Positions 83-63,393 of a stretch of DNA of 64,000 nucleotides are shown in pieces. Source of the DNA: Pavona decussata (taxonomy: Eukaryota); the NCBI GenBank assembly GCA_977016875.1, contig CDRNST010000096.1, forward strand, positions 124,001-188,000, written 5' to 3'. The position numbers were made by a program, and so were the translations under genes. The notes below the pieces were generated by a model. The model saw only the letters and a list, made by a program, of their open reading frames with translations. It ran no database searches and was not told the DNA's origin. Each line of letters starts with the position of its first letter. The first letter of the stretch is position 1.

Positions 83-241
83 TGTCATGATTGTTATGTA
101 ATTATCCAGTTGTCAAAGGTAGTCCATTTAATTATCCAATCAATCATACCATTATATCAGGTTACAGCTTTGTACTTTAAAGGTTAAGACACGATAGAAT
201 AAATTCATTCTTCTGTCCAAACTTGTTGTCCGATCTTAACA
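83..241 (+). repeat. 5' LTR of a Gypsy-type retrotransposon (159 bp)
   Basis: Starts TGT and ends ACA, has an internal AATAAA near 198, and is followed immediately by a PBS and the gag ATG. Confidence 0.8.
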
Positions 242-259
242 TGGTGTCAGAAGTGGGAT
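242..259 (+). promoter_or_regulatory. Primer-binding site, tRNA-Leu type
   Basis: TGGTGTCAGAAGTGGGAT is complementary to the 3' end of tRNA-Leu(CAA) and abuts the LTR end. Confidence 0.85.
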
Positions 260-268
260 CTCTCTAAA

Positions 269-1274
269 ATGGATAAATTAGACCCTCCTGATCCACTCTC
301 CTTCGAAGGAAATGTACGAGAAAACTGGAGAAGGTGGAAACAAGAATTTCAGTTGTACCTAGTAGCAACTGAGAGTGATGGAAAATCCGACAAGATCAAG
401 TCATCTATTCTACTCACTTGTATTGGGAAAAGGGCGCGTGAAATTTACAACACCTTCACTTTCCCGAGTGACGAGGACAAGATGAAAGTCAGCTCGATCC
501 TAAGCAAATTCACAGCATACTGCAATCCTCGAAAGAACACAACCTTTCTACGTTATCAGTTCTTTTCCTACAACCAACAGGATGGACAGCCTTTTGATGA
601 TTTTGTTACCGAACTAAAAAAACGTGCTGAGGAATGTGCTTTTGCCAGTCTGAAAGACTCTCTGATTACTGACAGGATCGTGTGCGGAACGACTGACAAC
701 AAACTTCGTGAGCATTACCTACGAGAAACAGATCTCAAGTTGGAGAAGGCCATTCTACTTGGTCCCGCTGCTGAGGAATCGAGAAAACATGCTGAAGAGC
801 TTAAACATGCATCGAAACCCACTCCGGTCGACATAGTCGGCCAAGGGGCGATACCCAAGACAATCAAAGGCGCGACATCAGAGTACTTTGCTAACTGCAA
901 ATTTTGTGGTCGTGGACATAATCGTGGAAAGTGCCCAGCATATGGAAAGACATGCAACGAGTGTGGTGCTGCCAAACATTTCGCACAATGCTGCCCTAAC
1001 AAACCCCGTAGATTTAATCCGCAACAAGCAAGCAACAGGCCGATTCGTGAAGTCAATCGCCAGCCTGACATCACAGAGGATGAATGGGAGAATTTTGTCG
1101 GTGCGATAACTGTCGAAAGCCTAACGGAAGAGAAAGATGTCAACGAAACGACTCTACACTCAAACAATCCAGAGGATGAGGAACTCGAAGGGTCTGTCGT
1201 TTTGGAATCCAATGGAACTAACATTAACTATAAGCTTGACACTGGCAGTCAAGTTAATGTTCTTCCGAAAAAGG
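269..1274 (+). pseudogene. gag: Gypsy gag plus the start of the aspartic protease, 3'-truncated
   Basis: Gag-like N-terminus, two CCHC knuckles (CKFCGRGHNRGKC, CNECGAAKHFAQCC) and protease motif KLDTGSQVNVLP. Homology stops at 1274, where Sola TIR sequence resumes. Confidence 0.85.
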
Positions 1275-2677
1275 AACTTCGTTCTGTTCAATTCGCATCA
1301 AAGAAAACCCAGTTTTCTTCTTGAAAATTTACTTTTGAAGTGTTTATTAAGTATCTGAGTCCAAAAATACTTCAGTGGATGAATTTTCCTGGTCATGAGG
1401 AGCCACAAAAAAATCTCAAAAATTCGCTCCCTTCAAGTTCTGAATTTGGTGCACTTTTTTAATAGAAAATTTCGCGATCCGGTAAAATACTAAAACCCTT
1501 CAAATTTAGAATTATAGATTGAGGAAGTATCGCTCTAAAACCAGGTTTAAAAAATAGCTTCGGGCTTTTTACCAGCGCCGAGCATTAGCGGCCTCAAAAG
1601 CATGAAAATCGCAATATCAACGGGTAAACAAACTGCACATGACTGCAACCAGTATGAAGAGAAACTATTGAAATTTCATGTAGTTTACCTCGGCATTCGC
1701 CTTTAAACCACCAGTGAAAGGTCATGTTTTGCTAACTGCAATAAGGCATTGTCTAAATAAGATATTTGGTTGTGTGTGTATCCTTTCATTATTATATAGC
1801 CATCTTGATGTGTGAAGTCAACAAGAGAAATTATCATCGCTTATTGCGATGGAGCGACAATAAACTCAAATGACTTACCATCGGACCACTTCTTTTCGAC
1901 TTGAAGATCGTTTAAAATGGAGATGAGTTGGATTTTCTTTGAATTTCGAAACGATTTTTTTGTTTCGAGCTGTCGCTTCGAGATCCGTTCGCAGGATTTA
2001 CTTGAAGCGAAAGCGCTCGTGAATCAATTCGACTCTGTTTATGGCATAAGTCACGTAACAAAATGTCACGCTTTTTTTAATTCACGTGACGTTAGGTTTG
2101 ACTATGTTGGGTGAAAAACACACGGGAAACGTGTGTCCTGACATGCTGAAAACAAAAACAAAAAAAACAAATTAAAAACAATGAAATCTTTACCAAAGTG
2201 TGGACAGGACCGATGATTTATAGTCGAATGTTTTTATCATCTATACACGCCAAAAGGACTGAGCCACAAAGCAAGCCTTGCTAAAGTATGATACTCTGCA
2301 TTTTAACGAGGTAAAACCTAGGGGAACACTTTTCTTGTTAGAACCACTAACTATTAACGCCTTGGTTTTCGCCTTCATGCAAAAGTCACTACGGTCTCAT
2401 CCCTGACTGTTCTCTTGAGGATGGGACAAAACAATGTTATCAGCCAGAAAAAAATCACTCCTCACTGCTGACATGCGCATCCTTGACAAAAAATAAAAAA
2501 ATAATAAAAGGAAAAAAAAAAACTAGTACATTTCTTCGTTTCTTATTTTTTGTTATTATTATTGTCATTTGCTTCATATTTTATACTGTCAATCAATTTA
2601 GTTTAACGTAGTTCCGCTATTGCGCAAATATTTGTCTGCAGCTATGTAAGCCTATGTCCCAATGTAAATTTTCATTA

Positions 2678-2716
2678 TACCTGAAGAAGGCTGGGTTGGC
2701 CAGCCGAAATATAGTA
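2678..2716 (+). ncRNA. Minimal type I hammerhead-ribozyme-like motif, probably in a Penelope-like element end
   Basis: tac-CTGAAGA-A-GGCTGG(gttgg)CCAGCC-GAAA-TA-TA-gta: conserved core, 6-bp stem II, 3-bp stem I, palindromic ATAT in place of stem III. Confidence 0.6.
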
Positions 2717-2859
2717 ACCTTTAAACCGTAATTCTACGTTGTATCGGTCTCTGCTTCTTTTATCATTCTAGTTGGGATCTGAGCTATGCTGACATGTGAA
2801 GGAATATACCATGTTTACTGAATCGCGCACTTTGGTTTTCGGACAACCAAAACTGATAA

Positions 2860-3344
2860 CAGGGGCACCCAACGGATGGTTTTGGTAAATTATCTGTTCG
2901 GAAGGCCCTTAATCCCCTACAATTTTCTGAGGGGAATTTTCACCTCGAACTTTCGTGATATGGAAAATTTAAGGCCTATTGTTTTCGGATTGATAAAAAT
3001 GTCGTTTTGGGGAAAAAAGGTCAGCTAAGATTTTCGGAAAGGAAATAAGACCTAAGGTTTTCGAGAAATGGACAAAAATGCCCTAGTAATTTCGAAAAGA
3101 CTGAAGTTCCCTAGAATGACCGAACAGATAAAAATATTATAGCGCAGCCTAAAATGAACCTACAGAACTTTAAAGGCACTCCAGATAGCCTAAAAAACCA
3201 ACATTACCAAATTCCAATTCGACCTGGAAACAGTGGAGAGAAGAGCCACTCCGTGGATTCCACTGAATTTCCTATTTATTTATTTATTTTTATTTAAATA
3301 GCGTTTCAAAGGATCTAAGAGAAAACTGTCGTTGGGTGCCCCTG
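2860..3344. mobile_element. P-element-like MITE
   Basis: TIRs CAGGGGCACCCAACG / CGTTGGGTGCCCCTG with a perfect 7-bp TSD CTGATAA (2853-2859, 3345-3351). Confidence 0.85.
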
Positions 3345-3349
3345 CTGAT

Positions 3350-4560
3350 AACTCTTCAGGTCGCTCTAGGACGTCAACCCTTGCAGCATCTTGGTTGATA
3401 GAGCGCCGGTATGTGGGCCTCCCATGACGATGTAAAGATGTTTGCCTTTGCTTGCTTCACGGTCAATGCAAACTCCTCTTTAAGTTCGTTTAGCACATCA
3501 ACGGTGTGCTGCGACATCAGAATGTTTATCACTAGAGAGCTGGCGACGCAGCGTGTCTGGTGAACGTATTGCGCGGGACAGGGCGCTTGTCTCATTTGGT
3601 GTTATTTCTTGGCATGTACCTGACAGGAGCCACCCCTTCTCCACCATCAAAGTTCGTCCGTTCGCATTTTCCAATGAGCGTTTTAGCTGAGATCTAATAG
3701 GGCTGACGTCTGTAGATGCCAAGTATGAATTCAGTGCATCTATAGGCCTAAATGTAACTCCTGATGTAATATAATAAAGTTATTTTATGTTCTGAATCTG
3801 AACTGTGCAAAAGGACAAGCTTTTCACACCTAAATTTTAACTCTTACTATCATTTCACACATACCGTGTACTATGAGTAGAGCCCCCCCCCCCCCCTAAT
3901 CCCCTCGGGCTCGATCCAATGCTTGCAGTTTCTCGTACTTTTTTTGGTGTCGCCTCGGTAGCTTCCGCAATAGGCCTGCGGTCACGGCATATACCTATGC
4001 AAAAGATTGCTAAGCTCACTTATTGATTTATGTAGTGATTAGTTCAAAGTTCAAAACACCAGCGACGAAAAAGACAAATACTAGTCACGTTTGGGTTATA
4101 CTCCCACGCAGTCGCTTTTAGGGGAGCAGGTAATACGATGTCCCCTAAAATGACGACTGCGTGGGTCCAGGCTACGTTTGGATTGCACTGTTTCCAAACT
4201 AAATTGCCCCTTTTATTCGCAAATCAGTTACAGAGGAGGCCAGCGTATATGACAAAATTAAGGTGTACTCAGTACACCAGTTTCAAGTTGTCGCAATAAA
4301 GCTAAGGACTCCGACTTGCCTATCCCACGGTCTGCTTTTCTCACCTTGTCAGTAGTGAGAGCCCAGTTAAGAGAGCCCATGCGGATCTCGTCATTGGTTA
4401 GCACTGGCTCTGCACCGGCCAATTTCCCACTTAGATGGGATAGGTTAGACTTTCTCAAAGTCCGTTTTTGTGGGAGTCCAGTCAGGCGCTCAGCTCATGA
4501 CTCCGTCGCCTTGTTGGTCACTCTTTCGGTGCATAAGAAGACGACTTGTGGCAAGTCTAT
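3350..4560 (-). pseudogene. Sola3-like transposase fragments
   Basis: Minus-strand peptides KADRGIGKSESLALLRQ, VSPIRSQLKRSLENANGRT and KQAKANI..WEAHI..SINQDAARVDVLE, with frameshifts, inside the long-TIR element. Confidence 0.55.
4100..4175. repeat. Short palindromic MITE remnant
   Basis: cccacgcagtcgcttttagggga ... tcccctaaaatgacgactgcgtggg inverted repeat. Confidence 0.55.
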
Positions 4561-6945
4561 AATGGTCTACACAGAAATGTAGTCGAAGAAAGAATCACGC
4601 GCGCGCTAAGATAAGCTCAACTTCAGAGTAAACATCACTTATTCGAACATTGCTAGTGTTGTCCCGAAACGTGTTTGTCCTGAGAAATTTCACGAGGTAT
4701 GCATTAAAGGGCCCTAGCCAGCCACGCCTATATATGTTTATATGCAAGAGTTTGGCTATTATATTTTATTCAGAGCATATCGAAATGAACGAAATCACTG
4801 TGAAACTACTAAAGATAATGACACATACTTTCAGGAACACAAAGCAATAAGATTTTGCTTCACCATGCAATATCAATGGAAAATCTCCAGATTCCCGGAA
4901 CAATTTTGGCTTTCTCCCGAAACAGCATTTGTAGAGTTGTCACCCCCCGTGAAAATAGCGGAGGCTGACTAGGGTCCTTTAAGTTTATTGTTGTCTTAAC
5001 GGTTTTGCACTAGACTTGCCCCAACGAAAGATTTGAACGGTTTACTAAAACACTTTTTTTCTGCTTGACCACCTTGTCAGATAATTGAACTGGCATTCGC
5101 AAATCTCACAAGCTGATTTCACCCAGTCACGATCGAAATGGCCGTTAGAATGATTGCAATCATCAGAAAATTCTTTAAACGCGGCGTAAATACAAAAAAC
5201 TACAAGTGTTTTATAATATAGAAATTTTGTATATTTGGTAATTCTTTCAATCAGAACAACGGCGGTGTTTATAAGAACACAACAGATCATTGTAACTAAA
5301 ATAAACACATTTAAAAAAACAAGTGCTACAGATCAGAGAAAATTAACGATTAAACAGAAAACTGAACTTTTTTAAAGATCTTGTTAACGAAGAATTGATG
5401 CACCCAACCCTTTTTCAGGTGCTGTTATCATCAGCGATCACGGAACTCTTTATCTGTCTGTATATCTTTTATCTTGTTTATAGCTGTTATTTATGTTGGC
5501 AAACCGACACATGCAAAAAGAACGCACGTCATTCTGGTTGAAAAAACTGAAAAAGTTCTCGTTAATTCAAAATTTTCTTATATCACCTTCTACCGGTATC
5601 TGTTCAATTTCCTCTCGTTAAAACATCATTCAAGTAATTATCTTTGCTGAATAAACCATTCACGCACACGCCATGACCGTCGTGAAATAAACAACCTGAA
5701 TCGATCACTCAGTGTTCACGGAGAAATTCAAAAGCCGCGTTAATGCGTGAACAGTCACGTTTGCATGTTCAAATAACTTTAAAGGAACTAGTTTCAGGCG
5801 CCCTGATGTTTGGAATTTTTTTTTTTTTCGTTTTTGGCCGTATGTAAGAAAAACCAATCACTCCGAAGGAAGCCGTTGCGTGACCGAAACAAGTACAGTC
5901 AAAAACAGTCGAAGACGGAAGATTATAAAGTCCGGCGGTTTCTGAGATGACTGTGGAGAACTTTAAAATTAGATATTTCTGTTAATATTTACTATGAGCC
6001 GACAGGGTTTTGTTACCGTCAAAGGATTTTTGCCCCTTCAATTGGCATTTGCCAAGTGACGTGAATGCGATAGCAGAAGTCATTGGTCACTTAAGGAGAT
6101 CAATTATCAACCCTTCAAGCTATGATGGCTTTGTGTGGTACACTAAGCCAAGAAACTGATACTTAGATGACATCTTATTCAAGGTGAGCTAAATATGAGC
6201 TTTCTGTTGTTTGGTTCATCGTAATATTGAGGGAAACAAGAAAAAAAAAAAACAAAAGTCTTAGTTGATTTTGACAGAAACAACATGTGTATCGCTTACA
6301 GTTCTTGACAGATAATGTTGCAATTATCGGGATTTTGAGAGCGTTAGTTCTCAGCGCTGATAGAAAGCCCGAAACTGATTTTTAAACCTGGTTTTAGAAC
6401 GGCATTTCGTCAATCAAGAATTCTAAATTTCAAGTGATTTGGTGTTTTACCGGGTAGGGAAACTCTCTCCTGAAAAAGTGCGCCAAATTGAGAATTTCGA
6501 CTGAGCCAATTTTAGTAACTTTCGGTACCTTCCCCACGACCCTCAAAACTAAAGCAGAGATCTATTATTGGCCTCAAACGATTCGTAAACACTTCAACTG
6601 CACATTTCCAAGCTTAAAATGAGTTTTTTGTCGATGCGAATTAAACAGAGCGAAGTTGAGAGAAGGTATGGGACACGTCTACTTTGGGTGCTTTTATAGA
6701 CACTAATGGGCCCGAACAGATTTTATTCAATTTTTCTGGGTTAGAAAAAGAATTCCGAGAAATCAAAACCACCACATTACTAGAACTACCATAGGGTATC
6801 CTTAGTCAATTTGTGACGGACTTTCACTTTTTATCATGTGCCACCCCTCGCTCGGTGTTAGTAGACATTCCCTCTAAAGTCCCAGCGCCGTTCTTTGCTT
6901 ACTGGCGGTTTTTTTCGGGTAACGTTAGTCCTTTGTTAATTAATT

Positions 6946-7097
6946 GTTGTTGTCATTATCCATTCAATGTTTTTCTTCTATATTTATATATTTATACTTT
7001 TTATTTTTTTTTTTATTTTTTATTTTATTTTGTCATCCGCATTTTCCCATCCGCATCCGCCATCCGCAGCCATCTGGTCCGCGTTTTACAGATACCC
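6946..7097 (+). repeat. Dispersed repeat (transposon end fragment); inverted copy at 32585-32755
   Basis: tgtcatccgcattttcccatccgc...ccgcgttttacagataccc matches the reverse complement of gggtatctgtaaaacgcgga...gggaaaatgcggatgaca. Confidence 0.75.
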
Positions 7098-7390
7098 GGT
7101 TTGACAGCCCCATTAACTGTTGGGGGAAAATTTCCTGTCTCCGCAAAATAGACTGCGAAAAATATGGTTTGCTAGAAGGAGTGTGTTTGTTTGTGAGACA
7201 CCTCCAGGACGAAAAGCAAAAGAAAGGGTCTCTGTGCTGCTTCCCAAAGCGTTCAAATCTTACGTTTCACCAAGAAAGGTAATTAAAACCCGGGTACTTG
7301 AATTTCCCTCAAAGTTTTCGTTGTTAAAGGTATTAAAGAGTGAGCAATTCGACTTGAGAAGCCTTTTGTTGGTCTTATTACTATTATTAG

Positions 7391-9279
7391 CGACAACGCT
7401 CCTGTAAAGGAAATGAAGCTGAACCTAGTGCAAAGATTGCCCCAGAGACTTCACCAGACTGGGAAGAACTAGTAAAAAAGTTAAGTGAATTGGAAAAGGA
7501 AAACCAAGAACTGAGAGAAAATAATTCACACCTTAATAACCAAATCAAAGAGGTGTTTTTAATAACATTGAATTTTGTCTTTTTAACATGTTTTATTTTC
7601 AAGTCAAGTTTGCATTTGCAACAGTTGAAATTCAAGCGGCAACTTACTTATTGAAAATGGTGTAACAACAAAAACTGAGTTTTCATTTGTAGTTACAGCA
7701 TTTTCTTGTCATACGAAAAAGGTTTACTTGGTAAAAATACACATAAAGAAAAGTAATAAATAACATGACAATGGATGCCCCCAACATTTCCAGATATGAA
7801 ACAGGAGAACATCGGCCTTCAAAAGAACATTGATGAGCTCAAAGCTGCCAAAAAACGCTAACTGAGAAAATCATGGCTATCAGTAAGTTAACATTGCCTC
7901 AAGCATATGTTTTGCTTTACAAAGCAGTATTGTACTGATACATAATTAAATTACTTTTACTGACATTATTTTATTATAAATACACAAAGACAACACAAAG
8001 ACTAAATAAAATTAATAAGAAGTTGAACTTTCCCCTTCCACAAATCTTAAAACAACCGCTTGGTCAAGGTAACATGAAAAACATTGTGCTACAGTGACAC
8101 CGGCACCTTGAAAATTAAATTTATTATATATGAATCGCTCCATTTAATTATGGTTCTACACATAAGTTACTCTCAGCATTTTCAAGTTACATGCTTAATA
8201 GTAGAAACTCATGCCAATAAGACATCAATAATAATTTTCACCTGCATTTAGTGAATTGGTGCACAACTTCCATAAGGCGTTTACTATACATTATTCAAAG
8301 GGAGACCATCTCCTGTACAGCCCTAAAGTAATGGAGGAATTTGCGAAAAGAACACGCCGAGATTTACAGTGCCATCCTCAATGAGTCCAAAGAAAAGCCA
8401 ACAGCAAAACGGGAGGAGCTACATAGAGTTAGAACTGTGGCAATAATGCAGAGTCTGAGTTTTATCAAAATCAGGTGTTTCTCCTTCTACAGATACAAGG
8501 AAATTAAGAGTTCACAAGCTTATTGTACATACAAGCAACATCATGTTTAAAAAGCAAAAAATCTCTTCACATTTCCAGTAGCTTCAGCTATTACAATGAA
8601 AACGAGTGAAAAAAATCCTGAGATGAGATATACAATTAAGTTTATTATTCAAAAGTGGAAAGAGGGGGTGGGTGCTTTTGAATGAGGTCAAGCATTCTAT
8701 AATAGTATTATAATAATAATTATAATATTACATGGAAAAGAAAGAGCTTTTTCCTACTTCTTTCTTTAACATGGGCTTTTTCAATCAAGGAAATCATGGT
8801 ATATTGCATCACATCCCTTGAGTTAAGAACCAGTCAGACTATTTAGACTTTGATATCCTGTGGTGAGTATATTATGACAAGTTTTAAAACTGTTCTTGGA
8901 AAAAGCAGTTCTTACTCCTGATTAAAGATGATATCCACTTCATCTACGCGATTCTCCAGCTCACAAGAAGCCAAACAAGTACTGCCTGGCATATGTGCAC
9001 AGATTTATTGGATGTACAGGAAAAAATGCCAGCATTATCCACGCCATCTGACTTGCCTAACTCGACAGAAGGGTTCCAGTCACCATGAAGAGTGGTGTGG
9101 TAAGGCAATACAGAGGAGGAGCAGATGTTCAATCAGTCCTGCAGTACTTTGATTTTACATTACGAGAGTTCTTTGCTTCAAGTTATTTAGGCACCCTGCC
9201 CACAGAGCACAGAAGAGTGGATATTAGCAACATGTGGCAAAGCTGTGAAAACCTAAGGTTGGAAACGAAAAACTGTTAA
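7391..9279 (+). pseudogene. Degenerate spliced gene of unknown, probably transposon-borne, type; coiled-coil exons then DDIHFIY..TAWHMCTDLL
   Basis: AG/GT-bounded segments at ~7391-7552, ~7794-7882, ~8290-8474 and 8928-9270 contain frameshifts. A further coding-like piece (..ELKDYLRHFLAILSGDFP) lies at 20220-20400, beyond the LTR element. Confidence 0.3.
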
Positions 9280-10015
9280 TGAAGTTGTTTTCTTAGCAAC
9301 CATTAAAATACGATGGACTTAATAAATTAGATCTTGATAAATTCAATCTTGACAAAAATGAATGCAAAGAAACAAGTTCAAAATTTAAATTAAAATAATG
9401 GCCAAAAAACTCAATTTATTTTTGGAATATAATTTTGATTTTGTTTTATCACCCATCAAGAATTGAAACTGTTACTCCCTTCCATCCTTGCAATTCTGTC
9501 CACACTCTTTCCTTAAATCACAGTACATCTAACCTTGTTCTTTTCCTACTTTGCTTACAGGAATTTTTTTTTACCAAATTTAATTGGGTGGCTTTTGGCT
9601 GTATAAAATGAAGATTATGTTTTGGCTGAACAGTATCTCTCAAACTGAGGGGGACGGGCTGCACATGGGAATATGACCAAACATTTGAGATCCAAAAGCA
9701 CTCCAACAGCACCAAATACAAATGCAAACCTGACCTAACACAGACAAATATTTTATCTGGCCACTTGAAAACAAAATTATGAAATGGTGTTATACAAATT
9801 ATTTTGCATTGTAATGCCTGTCATATAAAAGAATCTCTAAGTCTGCAATGTTATTATCAGTACAAATTCAAACCTGTTCATATCCTACGAAGCTCAGGAA
9901 CATTGTCAAAACCTTTCCAGACCCTTAAAAATAATTTTAAATCATATTCCAAGGACACTTGCGCACTTTTGAAAACTTCAACTCCTAGAACACATCTGTA
10001 AACTAATTCCCAGAG

Positions 10016-55262: not shown

Positions 55263-56459
55263 AGCTAAAAGTGGTCTTCCAAAAGACAGCTTTTTAAAGA
55301 CAGCTTTCCACAAATATGGACAGAAATCAACTTTTGGTGGCACAAGTCAAAAAATCGATTTTGCTCATAGGTAGGCCCTAGTAAGAAACAAAACGAGCTG
55401 TAGTTAGTTTTTCCAAATATGGCTTCCTTAAGCGGAAGCTTGCGAAAAACGATTTTCAGTACAGTTGACTTCAAAACCCCCTTATGGCCGGACGGAATTT
55501 TCCTTAACTTTGGCCGGCCGCATATCAATCCAAAGCCGGTCACAGATCTTGAAATGTGACCACACGGGAAAACGTACACTAACGATTTTCCGTTAAACGG
55601 TTGAAAACGTTAGCTATCCGTTAGATATCCTTTGAAAACGTTTATAATGTTAGACAAATCGTTAGGCATTAGTTTTCAACCGTTAGAACGGATGCTGTAT
55701 CCGTTAGGTAATAATTAGCATTCGTTAGCTCAAGTTTGGCGTCCGTTAGAACGACTAGCTAAAGCGTTAGAATGATTCCATTACCGTTAAATGGATATTA
55801 AAATCCGTTAGAATGACTGGCTAAAGCGTTAGAATCATTGCATTACCGTTTAACGGCAATTATAATCCGCTTAGAAGGTCGCTTGCTGCTAAAACGGTAC
55901 TTTTCCGCCTTTCATTGGTTTTCATCGCCGCTTAACGCCATCGAAAGTTAACCACTCGCCCGAACTCGTTATATCAATAGTAATTTGGTGTTTACTTTCC
56001 AACATTATTTTACGCAGTAAATTCAAAAAACTGATGCAAGAAAATAAACAGTTCGTAAACGAACTAAACGGAATAAAAATTGGCTACAAAAGACGTAGAC
56101 AGCTTACCTCCGGTTACCTGTTTGCTGTTGGTTTCTGATGAATTGAGTGAAAACGTAAGCTTATAATTATGGGCACAAACGAAAAGCTTCCTTTGAAATA
56201 AGCCTTGAAAACTCGTGTGTACAATATTTGTTTATTATCCAAATGAGACATGCTGAATCAAAATCCTTATAATGCACAAAGTTCAGTGTCGAAATCGTGC
56301 AAGATTTCGATCGCCTAGCAGAAATAATCACGTGCTTTCAGTTATGTAAACAACAGGCCCTAAGTCCCAGTCCATTTGTCCAAGAAGGCGCATTTCCATG
56401 ACAACAAAAACATTGGGGTTGATCTTCGTCCGAAGTAGAAAATAGTTTTACGAAACACA

Positions 56460-58193
56460 ATGGCTGAACAACACGGAGAAAGAGAAAATGGTGATGAATT
56501 CGTTAATAAGCTCAAGAAATTTCTTCAAGATGGCTGCGGATGTACTCTTCGTCCAAAGGACGGTCCATGCTCTCAACAATTCTCAGAAGAAACCGCTATG
56601 TTCAATTTGAACAATTGCCTCGAACTGTCGAGTGCTGAGCTAGATTTGGTCATCTTAGCAAGTATCCAGGCATTCACTCGAAGCGAATTTATTGGTGAAG
56701 AAAGGAGGAGTCCTCGATGCACGTTTTATTTTCAATCGAAACCAACCTGCAAGGAAATGTTTTTGCATTTCTATGGTGTGAGCTATTCCCGATTTAGACG
56801 GCTGAAAGAACACTATGAGAAGCACGGTATTGCTCCACGTCAACACGGGAATACTAAACGACTGCCAGAAAACACGCTTCCCCAGTCAACAATAGAGGAT
56901 GTTCATTCATTTATTGCGAACTATGTGGAAGAAAATGCGATTTCACTTCCAGGAAGGAAACCTGGATTCAAAAGCGACGACGTCAAAGTCCTTCCGTCGA
57001 GCGAAACAAAGATTGGTGTTTGGCGTGTGTACGAGACAGCCTGCAAAGCTGCGGATAAACACCCTGTAAGCTACTCGAAATTTTTACAAATATGGGGACA
57101 GTTTTACCCTTACGTGGTGATCTCAAAGCCAATGACAGATCTTTGTATGACTTGTCAGCAGAACACGAACAAACTACAGCGTGCCGCCAATCTTTCGGAA
57201 CGTGAAAAGGTTGAGTGCATCAGGGCCCACAAGGATCACATAAACAGTGCGCTATCTGAAAGAGACTTCTACAGAACCTTTTGTGCAAACTCTCAGAAAA
57301 AATTGGAGACTGATGACGCCGTATTAAATTGTGCGAACAGAAACGCCTGTTCATGGAACGGCACGATGCACTACTCATTTGATTATGCACAGCAAGTACA
57401 TATTCCAAGCAATCCCTTACAACAGGGACCAATTTACTTTAAAACTCCCCGAAAATGCGGGATTTTCGGGGTCATGTGCGAGGCAGTTCCACAACAAGTC
57501 AACTTTTTAATTGATGAGGCCGCTTCAGCTGGAAAAGGAGCGAATGCAACAATTAGTTACGTTCATTACTATTTTGCACATCATGGACTGGGGGAAACCG
57601 ATGTGCATCTCAACGCCAACAATTGCTCGGGACAAAATAAAAACAATTATTTTGTGTGGTACTTGGCGTGGAGAATTTTGATGCACCTTCATGATACAAT
57701 CCTGTATTCGTTCCTCGTTGCTGGCCACACTAAGTTTGGCCCAGATCGCTGCTTTGGGATGATCAAGAAGAGCTATAAAGTGACATACGTGTCGTCGCTT
57801 TACGAACTGGCGCGCATGGTTAAAAACTCCAGTAGTGTCGGTGTCAACAAAGCCCAGATCATGGGGACTCATGATGGCAGAATAATCGTTCCTGTTTACG
57901 ACTGGGTGTCCTTTCTGGAAAGGTACTTCAAAAGGATCCCGAATATAAAGAAATACCACCATTTCCGATTTTCAAAGGAAAATCCAGGTGTTGTCTTCTG
58001 CAAAGAGTTCGTGAACAGCCCAGAACAGTCGTTCGTGTTGTTAAAGGATCGAGCGATCATTCCTCCTTCTTCTGTCCTTCCATCAATCGTCAGGCCTGAT
58101 GGACTTTCACAGGAGCGCAAGAATTACCCTTACCTGGAGATACGGCAATTTTGCAAACCAGGCACAGAGGACTTGGTAGCTCCTGTGCCGTGA
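56460..58193 (+). CDS. Sola (Sola2-like) DDD transposase, 577 aa, open but with D-to-N at the second catalytic position
   Basis: GCGC..C..CKEMF zinc motif, TDLCMTC, HYSFDYAQQVHIP, GPIYF..RK, ANNCSGQNKN (usually ADNC), GHTKFGPDRCFG. Confidence 0.82.
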   Translation: MAEQHGERENGDEFVNKLKKFLQDGCGCTLRPKDGPCSQQFSEETAMFNLNNCLELSSAELDLVILASIQAFTRSEFIGEERRSPRCTFYFQSKPTCKEMFLHFYGVSYSRFRRLKEHYEKHGIAPRQHGNTKRLPENTLPQSTIEDVHSFIANYVEENAISLPGRKPGFKSDDVKVLPSSETKIGVWRVYETACKAADKHPVSYSKFLQIWGQFYPYVVISKPMTDLCMTCQQNTNKLQRAANLSEREKVECIRAHKDHINSALSERDFYRTFCANSQKKLETDDAVLNCANRNACSWNGTMHYSFDYAQQVHIPSNPLQQGPIYFKTPRKCGIFGVMCEAVPQQVNFLIDEAASAGKGANATISYVHYYFAHHGLGETDVHLNANNCSGQNKNNYFVWYLAWRILMHLHDTILYSFLVAGHTKFGPDRCFGMIKKSYKVTYVSSLYELARMVKNSSSVGVNKAQIMGTHDGRIIVPVYDWVSFLERYFKRIPNIKKYHHFRFSKENPGVVFCKEFVNSPEQSFVLLKDRAIIPPSSVLPSIVRPDGLSQERKNYPYLEIRQFCKPGTEDLVAPVP

Positions 58194-58401
58194 ACTGAAC
58201 TGAACTGAACTGTCTATCAATGATGTCTGGCTAAAAATGTAGTTTTTGATACTTCGTGAGGACTTTCGTTCAAGAGAAAATTAATGTAAATACAAAAAAG
58301 TACCCAGTTCATAGTTATACCTTTTCAAATTTTCATTTGTATATTGTAATGATTCACATTAAAAATAATTGTTGCATTTCGAGTTCCTCTTTATTCAAAA
58401 C

Positions 58402-58885
58402 AAACTTCTATCGAAATAAGACTACAAGGCCGAGGTTTCTATGAGCAAATAGTCAGCAGCCAAGTTGACTGTCGCTTATAGAAAATGAGGGCGAGCAGCC
58501 TGATTGTGTACACTCTAAATAATGATTGCAGTACAGAACTTACAATTTTTGGGCGAGACCAAGTTCTATCAGATAAGCTTCGAAGAAAGACAGCAAAAGA
58601 GCGCTCGCGCCCAGCCACTTGTTTTATAATACTTTACGACAAACATTTAATTGGAATAAAACACAAACAATCCTCAAGTAAGTGGACACGTGTCACCCTA
58701 ATTCGGATGTCGGCTGCTTGACAGTTAACTCGCAATTTTCGCGCGAGACCGTGTTCTATCTGATAAGATTCAAGAAAGGATGACGACAGAGGGCGCGCGT
58801 CAAGCCACTTGTTTTGTCACACTTGTTGACAGAAATTCGATTAGAGTGAGACAAAAAGTAAGCTTGGTCACACTTTCATTGACAG
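58402..58885. repeat. Diverged ~190-bp direct repeats between the two genes
   Basis: caatttt..gcgagacc..gttctatc.gataag..agccacttgtttt at ~58543 and ~58733, with a third TTCTATCGAATAAG near 58406. Confidence 0.65.
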
Positions 58886-59029
58886 AAATTCGATTATGGT
58901 AATAATAACAAGGTAAGGTAAGGATCTGTTTCCTCAGAGGTCCATTTCGGCAATAGACACTGCTTCGCACAATGAATAATTGATCATTATCCTCTTGTTA
59001 AAACTGTGTTCACAACTCGTTAAGAAATC

Positions 59030-61350
59030 ATGTCTGTCAACAAAAAAGTTAAAGTGTTTTGGAAAACTTCTGATGAATGGCGCGATCACCCTCACTGGCC
59101 AAAGAGGAAAGACATCAGGGCTTCGGGCGATAATACCGAGACCCTAGTCCCGCCAAAACAAGGCGACCCAGTCAAAATTAAATTTGGAGCGAGATGGTAC
59201 GATGCAGAAGTTGTTGAAGCCTGGCAACCAAGAACAACAAAAAACGGTAAGTTTCTTGTTCATGTTGTAATTTCGCCCTCTCACGTATATCAATGCCAAT
59301 TTTCTATTCATGTATAAAACCTGTTAATTGACTCTTCAGCAAATTAACTTAACTACTTTTAACTCCTAGCGAAAAGATCTTCCCGCACCGATGGCCAACC
59401 AAGAGAAAAATCCAACGAGCAAACTAAGCAGTCGTTGGCGAACCAACTCAGCACAACACATCCGTATGAAGGCTTCGTGGCGGAGCAACAGGAACGAGAG
59501 GTCATCAAAGCGAGCAGCCAAGAGGATGAAACCTAGCGAAACCGAGAGCAACACTGGTTCATCTCATACAGAAAAGGACGAGCGGGAGGTCGAGACCATC
59601 AGACAGCAGTTGAATGCCAGAACTGAAGAGTGTGCAGCATTAAAAGATCAGCTGCGGGACCTGCAGCGAGCCAATGCTGATGTCCTTAAATGGCAGCAAA
59701 GTGTACAAGAAAACCTGTGTAAGGTAAGAAGAATGATGAGTATGATTTGCATTTTCAGTTGCTATGATTAGGATTATGGTCCCTTAGTAACGTATAGCAT
59801 ACTAGTAGTATCGGGTGAAGTACAACAGTTTCTCTAGAAACTAATCTACCTTTTTGTCATCTAAAGTTTCTTTAACTAGCAAACTACGTATGTTATATTT
59901 TATTTAGAACTTACACATAGAAGTTTTTTAGCTATGGACGCCAAATGTAATTAAGTTCTATAACCCTTACCTTTTAACTTGATGCTATGAGCTTTAACGT
60001 AATTATCTGACACAGTGTAGGAAATGGTAGTCCATATAAGCAGTATGATATGTTTTCCGGCGTATCTTATCGAAAAAAATCGAAAACGTCAAATTCAATT
60101 TTGTTCCGTAATCGAAAGTTTGATTAAATTGATTGATTGGGTTTTTTTGCTGGAAAGATCAATTGGCTATGTCGGTTTCTTTGTATGTTAAAAAAGCAAA
60201 ACAAACAAAAGCGTGCCAATACAAGATACAAGCTGGTTCCGGGAACGTTGAAAACATGCGCTTCGCTTGTATAGGCTTCCTGTTGGTACAAGCGAAAAAT
60301 TTGGGCATTGCACTAAGTTTATAATGATTTTTTTTTTTTTGATTTTATTTCATTTTCATATAGATGATGGAGTGTGTAGAAGATTCAGTCGCGGCTATGG
60401 AGGACAACTTCGCAAAGGCATTGAAAAGAATCGAGCGGCGATTGGAGTCTCTGGAGACTCTAGCATCTACTAACCATGGTTTGGTAAGTTAAAGTCACGA
60501 ACCCCTGTGTCGAAAATCAATGTTGTTCACATGTCACTTCAATACGTGTGATTTGTTTATCCAAGATTGCATGCAACAATGACTTTAACTGTGCTATTTA
60601 CGTTATTTACATTGGTATGGAGGAGCAAAATATCTATGTATTGTTTTTACTCATCTTAATTCAAGCCAAATAGCATCGATCAGACAACGTCAGTTTTACT
60701 TTTAATTGTGATGTTACTCGCTTTTCGTACTAAAGTCTCGTAAAAGTCTAATGTCTAAAATGTGGCTGTTGATTGATCGTTGTTTGTTATTATTATTGCA
60801 GCTCAGTACAAGTACTATCCAACACGAAAAAACGGCTGACTTACAGCAGACATTGCCTTCAGACCTCCAGACGATCGACGAAGACGACCTCATGGTGTTA
60901 TCCTGCATCATGGAAGACGTCAATTCTGAAGACAGTTGTCCCGCCATGTTAGCTCCACCTGCAGCGCCCTGTGCACCAGCCGCTTCCAAAACACCAACAG
61001 TCATGCCAAGCTCAGCGTCGATCAGCGAGGAGGTCGTCCAGACTTGCGCCACGCCGAGGAAAGTGCAGGGGGTGCAGTCCGTTTTGCAGTCGGAACAAGT
61101 TCCGCACCGAGTCGCTGTAAAGCTGCTTCCTTACTTCTTCACGAAACAGGAGCTGAGTAGCAGCAACACGGAAGGAACACACAAGAAGCAGCGCCTAGAT
61201 ACTACAAAATTGAACTCGTTTAAGGTTTTAGTGTTTACGAAATTTCCAATAGACTCTCTGGAAGAGAAGGAGAAATGTTGGAAATTCATCAAGGGAAAAA
61301 TAAACGATAGGTGTCGGGCCACCAAGTTCGTATTGGGAAGGGAGGGTTAG
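59030..61350 (+). CDS. Four-exon accessory gene (Tudor-like N-terminus, coiled coil, C-terminal BEN domain) with one frameshift
   Basis: Exons 59030-59246, 59370-59723, 60364-60483 and 60802-61350 with GT-AG introns in compatible phase apart from one extra base near 59530. C-terminus AVKLLPYFFTKQELSSSNTEG..RLDTTKL..W..IKGKINDRCR. Confidence 0.72.
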
Positions 61351-61627
61351 AAAAATTATTGTAATCGTTAACTTTTCCTTGAAAGTTGCACTTTAAATTT
61401 GTAATTTGTAAATTAGTTTTTTATAGTGTGTGAATTAAAGATCATTGCGTTGCATAATTTATTTGCTTTTATTGAGGTTGAATTCCATTTGTGCATGAAA
61501 CTATTTAAATTTATCTTAAACCTTCAGTCACAACGACTTCATGTACACCACTACAAATTATGTGAAGGCTATGTAATGCACAGTTCGATAACCATGCACA
61601 TGCCAGTTCAAACTTTTTCAGACTTTG

Positions 61628-61686
61628 CAGACGGATTTCCGGCTTTTGCTTCACAGCGGCGTGAAACAAAGCCGGAAATCCGTCTG
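61628..61686. repeat. Palindromic mini-MITE/hairpin
   Basis: 19-bp perfect arms cagacggatttccggcttt / aaagccggaaatccgtctg. Confidence 0.75.
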
Positions 61687-63393
61687 TGTTCGCAGCTCTC
61701 AGAACTGCATGACATTTTCGATTCACCCACACCCACTTAGTATGTTTCTTGACTCACTGTCACGTGCAAACAGAACGTGTGTAGGGACTGGGAACGAGGC
61801 TGCTTTGGGATGTAAACTTCGTTTGAAAGATATGAAATTGGCTTGTCTTCATTCTTGAATTTGGTGTTATCTTTGCTCTTTTCGAAATGGCTTTGCAAAC
61901 TGCGATCTTCTCGCTAGAACGACTGACATTTTTCGACATTCTTTGTCAAGATGTTAAATTCAAGCGACATTTTCCGACATTCTTTGTCGAGATATTAAAC
62001 TCAAGCGATCGAGCGTTTCATTTTTGTTGTTTACTTGCGGACCCTTAAAAGGAAGCTCACCAGTATCCAACTGAGTAAGTTACATCGTTAGATTTTTACA
62101 GTAAAATATATGGCATTCCCAGTATTTTGTTTTGAAATCGTTTGTCTTCGTTCGGTCGTTCGAATGCGTTGTTATGTTGACCGTGAACTTTTTCTTGACA
62201 CAGCTGTTGTTACAAACGCTTTTAGGTCAGCATTATTCGTTAGCAGGCCGTTAGCTGTTATTAATGCTTTTAGGTCGGCATTGTCCGTTAGCAGACCGTT
62301 AGGGTTGTTGTACGTAGCCGTTTAACGCTTTGATCTTTTCGTTAGAGGAGGTTGAGAAAACATTTAACGATTTGAGCAATTCGTTCTATGAACTCGCCAA
62401 ACCGTTTAAAAACGCTTTGAGCATTCTGTTAGAATCCTTTAGACAAACGTTAGAACGCTTTCAATATCGTTAGCTATCCGTTAGTTTTTAGCCGTTTAAC
62501 GAAAAGTCACTAGTGTAGGTTTTCCCGTGCGTGGTCACAAATAACATCTATTGCTTTTCTAGGTCTTTTTCTTCTGTTCCACAGAAAAACATTCAAAACT
62601 TAGGTTACTTTGATGCCGGAAAAAGGTCTAGAAAAACATGCAATAAATGCAAATTTTTAACAACCAAATTGTCAATCTTAAAGGGAGAGGTTCACGGTTC
62701 TGCACATGTCCATGAATCAAAATACGTTTTCGCCTTTGCTCACTATGACCCAAGCCTGTTTAATTTAATTCGTTGTTTATGAACCATTCGCAAAGGAATA
62801 GGTAACTCGCGTGGTAATTTTTTCATATGATTCCTTTATTTTGTATGCAAATAACTGTAAACACATCAAGCATGGAATAAATCCTATGGGTCAACCCTAC
62901 ATTCAATATCAACAATACGAGTACAATCCACTACCATTTTCTGTGCATTTTGGTCATCAGTCATTTTGCTTGGACTAATTATAGAATGTGATCACTGAAG
63001 TACAAGTGAGTGGGACTATTAAGGACATAAAGTTGATAAGAAATAGAAAAAGCATGTAAACCCCTTCCATGGGCAATAACTAAGATTTTCATAAAATGAC
63101 TTTCTAAGGCTTCACTGGGTCGATCATAATATCAAAACAAAGTTTGAAGTAAATTAATTTAGGTGACCCACAGGGTCTCGAATTTGTCACCTACCTTGTC
63201 GAAAATCTGGCATTCGCATTGTTAACAATGGCATGACATACCCGGTGACTGCAAACTACAAAAGCCAAAAGAGACTAAAAAACGTGCATCAGTTTGAGAC
63301 CCAAAGATACGGAAACTATACTGATACCTTACTGAAAAATCCAACATAAGTTTTAGGCATCTTCTTTATCTATTTGGCCAATACAAACATAAT

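Follow-up and report, generated by a model that had tools for sequence, protein, structure and literature searches.

A probable two-gene Sola-superfamily transposon with a BEN-domain accessory gene in the stony coral Pavona decussata

The locus and its two genes

We analyzed a stretch of 64,000 nt from Pavona decussata (NCBI GenBank assembly GCA_977016875.1, contig CDRNST010000096.1, positions 124,001 to 188,000 of the forward strand), hereafter the window. Coordinates without a contig name are positions in the window. The subject is the element at 55556-62538, which starts with GTGACC, finishes with GGTCAC, and has a perfect 4-bp AAAT on both sides. It encodes a transposase with Sola motifs and, downstream, an accessory gene with a BEN domain in its last exon. 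The element is very probably one copy of a cut-and-paste transposon of the Sola superfamily in stony corals that has two genes and is Sola1-like by motif. The copy itself is an ordinary Sola-type transposon. The point of interest is its second gene, for a BEN-domain protein, which is conserved family-wide. An earlier note on this DNA had described two tandem genes inside an EnSpm/CACTA-style shell; the genes were confirmed (a 577-aa open reading frame (ORF) at 56460-58193 and a downstream gene with a BEN last exon), and the shell was not. The features are as follows, with the evidence in brackets.

55552..55555, no strand: left target site duplication, AAAT (direct sequence reading and 19 paralogous empty sites)
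55556..55608, plus strand: left terminal inverted repeat, starting with GTGACC, with a 2-bp spacer deletion before CACGGGAAAAC (alignment of the two ends)
55579..55870, plus strand: left subterminal array with CCGTTAG-type motifs, two units of 62 nt at 55742-55865 among them (repeat and motif counts)
56460..58193, plus strand: transposase ORF, 577 aa, Pfam DUF7869, Sola1-like DDD motifs (ORF, Pfam, homolog alignment)
58537..58857, plus strand: two diverged 131-nt direct repeats between the genes (repeat search)
59030..59246, plus strand: accessory exon 1 (phase 1), Tudor-like domain as a lead (alignment, nonsynonymous and synonymous divergence, fold model, splice sites)
59370..59723, plus strand: accessory exon 2, linker and coiled coil (related contig from a putative RNA run, reading frames, homology to the relative L061)
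60364..60483, plus strand: accessory exon 3, coiled coil (spliced contig, homologous exon in L061, splice sites)
60802..61350, plus strand: accessory exon 4, BEN domain at about 61114-61320 (Pfam BEN, genomic relatives)
62086..62484, plus strand: right subterminal array, CGTTAG-type motifs in the strand orientation of the left array (repeat and motif counts)
62484..62538, minus strand: right terminal inverted repeat, ending in GGTCAC (inverted-repeat search and alignment of the ends)
62539..62542, no strand: right target site duplication, AAAT (direct sequence reading and empty sites)

The transposase gene is intronless. A Pfam scan of its product at E up to 1 matched DUF7869 (1.5e-17) and, weakly, HTH_29 and DUF7096; a CMC-family domain was looked for in the same scan and none was found. 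The motifs of the family are FDYAQQ, IYFKTPRK, DEAxxxGKGANxTI, ADNCxGQNKN, and GHTKFxPD. The defining traits of Sola elements are a DDD transposase and 4-bp target site duplications (PMC10741241). The RNase H-like cores of Sola1-1_AP, Sola2-1_HM, and Sola3-1_HM are printed in the supplement of Majorek et al. 2014 (PMC3985635), where the Sola1-1_AP blocks read FDLEKV, FYYKRK, DESEGKRGSNEI, SDNCGGQNRN, and GHTQS. The coral motifs match these block for block by eye. The cores of Sola2 (DFAENY, DGCAGQYKN, SHG) and Sola3 (DYCQ, SDNASSYHGN), from the same supplement (PMC3985635), fit less well. By motif, the transposase looks Sola1-like rather than like Sola2 or Sola3. The Sola motifs quoted in the earlier note are present, with the qualification that NCSGQNKN is preceded by N in the window and by D in 64 relatives, a difference that is taken up below with the state of the copy.

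Among named database proteins, the nearest are uncharacterized ones from the stony corals Oculina, Montipora, and Acropora, and a literature search for DUF7869 returned nothing. The ESM Atlas holds DUF7869 clusters in molluscs, arthropods, and rotifers. In one of its clusters, 11% of the members also carry the bacterial DDE_Tnp_ISAZ013 family. Six metagenome contigs (L108, L113, L114, L117, L123, L124), probably from other eukaryotes, encode relatives that share only 27-35% identity with the transposase.

The accessory gene is modeled as four exons with canonical GT/AG splice sites. The Pfam BEN match covers residues 122-190 of the last-exon ORF (8.4e-7, 29.5 bits; cut-off 23.2). Exons 2 and 3 look like a coiled coil. 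Exon 1 had no match in a Pfam scan. Its AlphaFold model has a predicted local distance difference test score (pLDDT) of 67, and the top Foldseek matches of the model are the Tudor domains of KDM4A/B/C, RBBP1, and ARID4B, all of them weak (E 0.1-1.8, template-modeling score 0.5-0.57). The two 131-nt direct repeats upstream of the gene are possibly its promoter region.

Contigs from sequencing runs guessed to be RNA bear on the exon model. One contig covers 58586-59245. Another skips 59719-60363 between GT and AG and joins 59718 to 60364, and loose letters of the same contig connect the end of exon 3 with the start of exon 4. Thus, genes of the accessory family are spliced. The contigs are 95-99% like the window and are therefore derived from related copies, so that they speak for splicing in the family and not for expression of the window copy. 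The donor of the spliced junction lies 5 nt upstream of an AAG/GTAAG donor, and the latter is conserved in L061. The only spliced contig (run X16) also skips 51 nt inside exon 3. This skip and the upstream donor may be peculiar to the related copy, or the transcript may be an alternative or aberrant one.

The accessory gene across the family

Homologs were searched for in the window's own assembly (602 Mb, 1180 contigs) with the transposase and both element ends as queries. The transposase query gave 80 matches and the end queries gave dozens. The accessory gene was searched for exon by exon, and co-occurrence of the two genes within the genome was judged from the coordinates of the transposase and BEN-exon matches. 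For the last exon, 36 genomic relatives were found, and such a relative lies 0.8-10.2 kb from 13 of the 17 full-length transposase copies (identity of at least 62%). The pairing extends to other coral data, where the earlier note had suggested looking for it: homologs of exon 1 and/or exon 4 adjoin the transposase in about 24 coral metagenome contigs, the 55% clade included. The order of the genes in these contigs is tandem or convergent.

The accessory gene also appears to be kept at the protein level. Exon 1 has a mean column identity of 78% (alignment A2), and its nonsynonymous divergence (pN) is 0.15-0.27 against a synonymous divergence (pS) of 0.65-0.85, which is saturated. The positions of the exon 2/3 and exon 3/4 junctions are common to the subfamilies. 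A Sola lineage with two components, the second a BEN accessory gene, is supported by this co-occurrence and purifying selection. The earlier note had offered such a lineage with convergent, CACTA-like ends as one of its two readings. The lineage stands; the CACTA-like ends do not. A literature search found no description of a BEN-type second gene for Sola elements or of BEN genes in DNA transposons, Repbase not being covered by it.

One complete relative, L061, was examined in full sequence. It lies at 203-9874 of G000:C78:2967000-2976990, is about 9.7 kb long, and has 4 near-identical genomic copies. Its transposase is 81-82% identical to that of the window, both of its genes have uninterrupted ORFs, and about 3.5 kb of unassigned sequence separates them. 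L061 has its transposase cassette in the opposite orientation to that of the window; its BEN gene points to the same end. A homolog of exon 1 was not detectable in L061. An ORF at 5364-5594 (minus strand), ending in GGMVTVNWQGETVEAKIIAL, looks like a different Tudor-like first exon, and it may replace the window-type exon 1 in this relative.

Several points weigh against reading the locus as a two-component Sola transposon. The likeness to Sola1 was judged by eye against blocks printed in a supplement, and not from a computed score or a tree. The Tudor-like call for exon 1 is a lead, given the modest confidence of the fold model and the weak Foldseek E-values. The role proposed for the BEN protein is one that we infer. 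Sequence alone cannot tell a 4-bp duplication from a 2-bp one in which the outermost bases of the element are T...A. No BEN exon was detected next to the four copies at about 50% identity in the coral's own genome, and the orientation of the gene pair varies between subfamilies.

The last two of these points would suit a BEN gene that is a passenger, i.e., a host gene captured once that has no part in transposition. Passenger-like genes are known from Sola2 elements, which carry Fanzor (PMC3627910). A passenger is harder to reconcile with the breadth of the pairing, which holds for 13 of the 17 full-length copies and about 24 metagenome contigs and reaches into the 55% clade. Nor would it lead one to expect that exon 1 keeps a mean column identity of 78% alongside saturated synonymous sites, or that the two junction positions are kept across subfamilies. 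We consider the passenger explanation unlikely and retain the BEN gene as a component of the lineage.

Ends, target site, and state of the copy

The terminal repeats of the element are imperfect and about 55 bp long, and relatives have the same termini. The earlier note had reported terminal inverted repeats, and an inverted repeat was indeed detected between 55563-55608 and 62484-62529 (46 nt, 85%). The limits that it had drawn, 55561-62531 with CAC termini, fall short of the true ends. In every relative, GTGACC comes first, then 1-3 variable bases, and then CACGGGAAAAC or a variant of it, so that CAC lies 7-9 bp inside the GTGACC...GGTCAC ends. The left repeat of the window copy reads GTGACC-A-CACGGG and the right one GTGACC-ACG-CACGGG; 2 bp are missing from the left arm. 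The 2-bp CA/CG target site duplication that the earlier note had seen falls in this variable spacer. One terminal type (GTGACCGTGCACGGG) makes up at least 16 of the sampled ends.

The duplication is given by empty sites. The element splits an interspersed repeat, and each flank is one half of it. Many genomic sequences match the left flank (through 55555) at 85-87%, and many match the right flank over its initial 142 bases (62539 onward) at 89-93%. At 19 places in the genome both flanks are matched and the matches overlap by exactly 4 bp; these are paralogous empty sites. Two of these pairs are C153:1130084-1130346 with 1130343-1130484 and C10:2570464-2570736 with 2570733-2570874. The remaining sites lie on contigs C51, C90, C43, C6, C519, C391, C195 (two sites), C182, C327, C273, C169, C131, C79, C68, C72, and C15. 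At 2 of the 19, the match to the right query leaves out its first base. Thus, the inserted DNA is 55556-62538 plus a 4-bp duplication, AAAT.

The same target preference is seen in 62 distinct ends, sampled from the coral's own assembly and from metagenome contigs of corals. Each has A-N-N-T as the four bases just outside GTGACC (ATAT 18, ATTT 17, AAAT 9, AATT 8). The A at -4 and the T at -1 are invariant, the middle positions -3 and -2 are mostly W with few G or C, and the bases beyond these four show no bias. Perfect 4-bp duplications flank four complete copies, namely the window element (AAAT), L032 (AAAT, 1410 bp), L036 (ATAT, 1573 bp), and L061 (ATTT, about 9.7 kb). Sola2 elements have AWWT duplications of the same kind (ATAT, AAAT, ATTT; Bao & Jurka 2013, PMC3627910).

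The constancy of A at -4 and T at -1 across the 62 ends is also what would be expected of bases that the element itself owns. The outermost bases would then be T...A (TGTGACC...GGTCACA) and the duplication would be the central 2 bp (WW), and the filled and empty sequences are identical under the 2-bp and 4-bp readings. By the usual convention, however, the longest flanking direct repeat is the duplication, and published Sola elements carry 4-bp AWWT duplications (PMC10741241, PMC3627910). We regard the 2-bp alternative as quite improbable, and the 4-bp duplication is used here.

The host repeat around the element (55290-55555 and 62539-62680) is abundant, about 400 bp long, with several hundred candidate copies at 85-93% identity. 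A second, different repeat family adjoins it at 62678-62938. This one is about 260 bp long, its copies are 90-92% identical, and a first look gave 773 candidates.

The ends and the transposase travel together. The same kind of ends surrounds transposase relatives at 82% identity (C274, C78, C206, C126; elements of 9.6-10 kb), at 77% (C6, C49), and at 70% (C49, C194), as well as relatives of lower identity down to the clade at about 50% (L025, L026). The pairing recurs in coral metagenome contigs. No copy of the ends with another transposase was found in the coral's own genome or in the metagenome contigs. Co-occurrence of ends and transposase was a check that the earlier note had proposed, and it came out positive over relatives at 50-82% identity and in the metagenome contigs. 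The ends belong to the transposase and there is no separate shell. The earlier note had seen no separate Sola ends around the transposase; the element itself has ends of the form G-G...C-C with a 4-bp duplication, an arrangement that the earlier note had listed as one that would refute its reading.

Among the relatives, the clade at about 50% identity (L025, L026, L027; G000 contigs C157, C273, C45) has longer transposases (682-aa ORFs), GTGACC ends, AWWT flanks, and a different subterminal motif, and no BEN exon was detected nearby. L032, L036, and the loci L046-L060 are non-autonomous derivatives of 1.4-1.6 kb or longer with the same ends and motif arrays.

These results leave next to no probability for an EnSpm/CACTA shell that acquired a Sola transposase, whether by capture or in exchange for its own enzyme. 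That idea drew on CACGGGAAAA, which occurs in inverted orientation near both ends, and on the subterminal arrays and second gene, which are En/Spm traits as well. The CACTA likeness arose because the ends had been drawn 7-9 bases too far in. The internal CAC is not conserved: the corresponding sequence is GTGACCTTCTTTGGGAAAAC (TTTGGG) in the 82%-identity subfamily (L061) and GTGACCTGGAAAGCGAAAAC (GAAAGCG) in another. The shell reading is already refuted by the empty sites, since a 4-bp duplication is the hallmark of Sola. The same ends also accompany the transposase family across relatives at 50-82% identity and in other data sets, no CMC family of Pfam matches the transposase, and the ends were not found around any other one.

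The dense subterminal arrays of the earlier note were borne out by counts. The window holds 31 copies of CGTTAG where 15.8 would be expected, a count that no shuffle reached. Of these copies, 20 fall within 55579-55832 and 62086-62484, all except one of them on the plus strand. Over the first 400 bp of the ends, the mean motif count is 7.3 forward and 1.8 reverse, and outside it is 0.05. The strand of the motifs is identical at both ends of any one element. A CCGTT core is common, and its tail is subfamily-specific (CCGTTAG, CCGTTTA, CCGTTAA, CCGTTCG). This is the pattern that would be expected of sites co-evolving with a DNA-binding protein encoded by the element, which might be the BEN product or the N-terminus of the transposase. 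Two further repeats lie inside the element downstream of the BEN gene. One, at 61628-61686, is a perfect inverted repeat with arms of 19 nt and a loop of 21 nt; after it come two 41-nt tandem units at 61925-62006.

Judged from its sequence, the window copy is dead, a relic that cannot work alone. Residue 387 of the transposase is N (AAC, after GCC), where D is found in 25 of 25 aligned homologs and at all 64 other loci, and the motif reads NNCSGQNKN in the window versus ADNCxGQNKN in the relatives. On this alignment, a CpG-type change of GAC to AAC has put Asn 387 in the place of the predicted second catalytic Asp, which is otherwise invariant. Accessory exon 2 is without 8 nt after 59502 that a related contig carries. 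The conserved frame is that of 59372 upstream of 59502 and that of 59370 downstream, and L061 matches both halves. With the missing 8 nt, exons 1 and 2 together would come to 579 nt in phase; without them, a premature TAG is reached at 59534-59536. The copy is considered inactive because the catalytic Asp is lost, the accessory gene is frameshifted, and the left repeat is 2 bp short. The assembly holds no copy of more than 82% protein identity to the window transposase.

A domesticated host gene pair might be suggested by this last result and by an ORF that is uninterrupted despite the lost Asp, but it is extremely improbable given the inverted repeats and target duplication, the insertion inside another repeat, the frameshifted partner gene, and putative-RNA contigs that are only 95-99% alike and hence from other copies.

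Known systems and a possible mechanism

The Sola1 group is reportedly due to Bao, Jurka and Kapitonov in 2009. The coral element resembles the pea aphid Sola1-1_AP in its DDD RNase H-like core, which by eye has the same order of motifs, with common wording in FD..., ...FYYKRK..., DE....KRG.N.I, SDNCxGQN(R/K)N, and GHT. It further resembles Sola1 in the 4-bp duplication, the terminal inverted repeats, and a length of several kb. Unlike Sola1, the coral family has a conserved second gene (Tudor-like, coiled coil, BEN). The Sola2 elements of Dictyostelium and Polysphondylium carry Fanzor1 (Bao & Jurka 2013, PMC3627910), and they share with the coral element AWWT duplications, short inverted repeats, and a transposase gene that has a second gene next to it. 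The core motifs of Sola2 (DFAENY, DGxAxQYK, SHG) fit worse, however, and its second gene is a TnpB-like Fanzor, not BEN.

Two-gene systems are also known outside the superfamily. PIF/Harbinger elements have a transposase, a DNA-binding partner of the Myb/SANT type, and a 3-bp TWA duplication. In common with them, the coral element has a catalytic protein with a separate putative DNA-binding partner, and short repeated motifs near its ends. The transposases are unrelated, the duplication is AWWT versus TWA, and the partner is BEN versus Myb/SANT. By analogy, the coral element probably works like the two-gene system of PIF/Harbinger. CMC/EnSpm-CACTA elements have CACTA (or CCC) termini, a 2-3-bp duplication, and an enzyme of the Transposase_21 type. 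None of these is found in the coral element, which is like EnSpm/CACTA in its subterminal repeat arrays and in a second product encoded by the element.

A mechanism can be sketched on these likenesses. The transposase would cut at the GTGACC ends. The BEN protein would be a DNA-binding partner, encoded by the element, that recognizes the subterminal motifs, and it may help to gather the ends or the transposase, much as the Myb-like partner of PIF/Harbinger or TnpA of En/Spm. In its strongest form, the coral Sola1-type element would be a true two-component system in which the BEN protein binds the co-evolving CCGTT motifs and is needed to build the transposition complex or to direct it, with the Tudor-like domain possibly steering insertion to marked chromatin. 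We put this forward tentatively and hold it to be rather doubtful. If true, it would be the first BEN-domain partner described for a superfamily of cut-and-paste transposons and a possible source of host BEN genes.

Since the chimeric claim fails, there is no evidence here of transposases swapping between superfamilies. A well-delimited Sola family in corals, with its ends, target preference, and non-autonomous derivatives, aids repeat annotation, where its proteins now appear as DUF7869 or uncharacterized. In animals, BEN proteins bind specific DNA sequences in the regulation of chromatin, and where they came from is unclear. A lineage of transposons carrying and spreading a BEN gene under selection is a plausible reservoir of BEN genes and would be a tractable system for the function of such partners.

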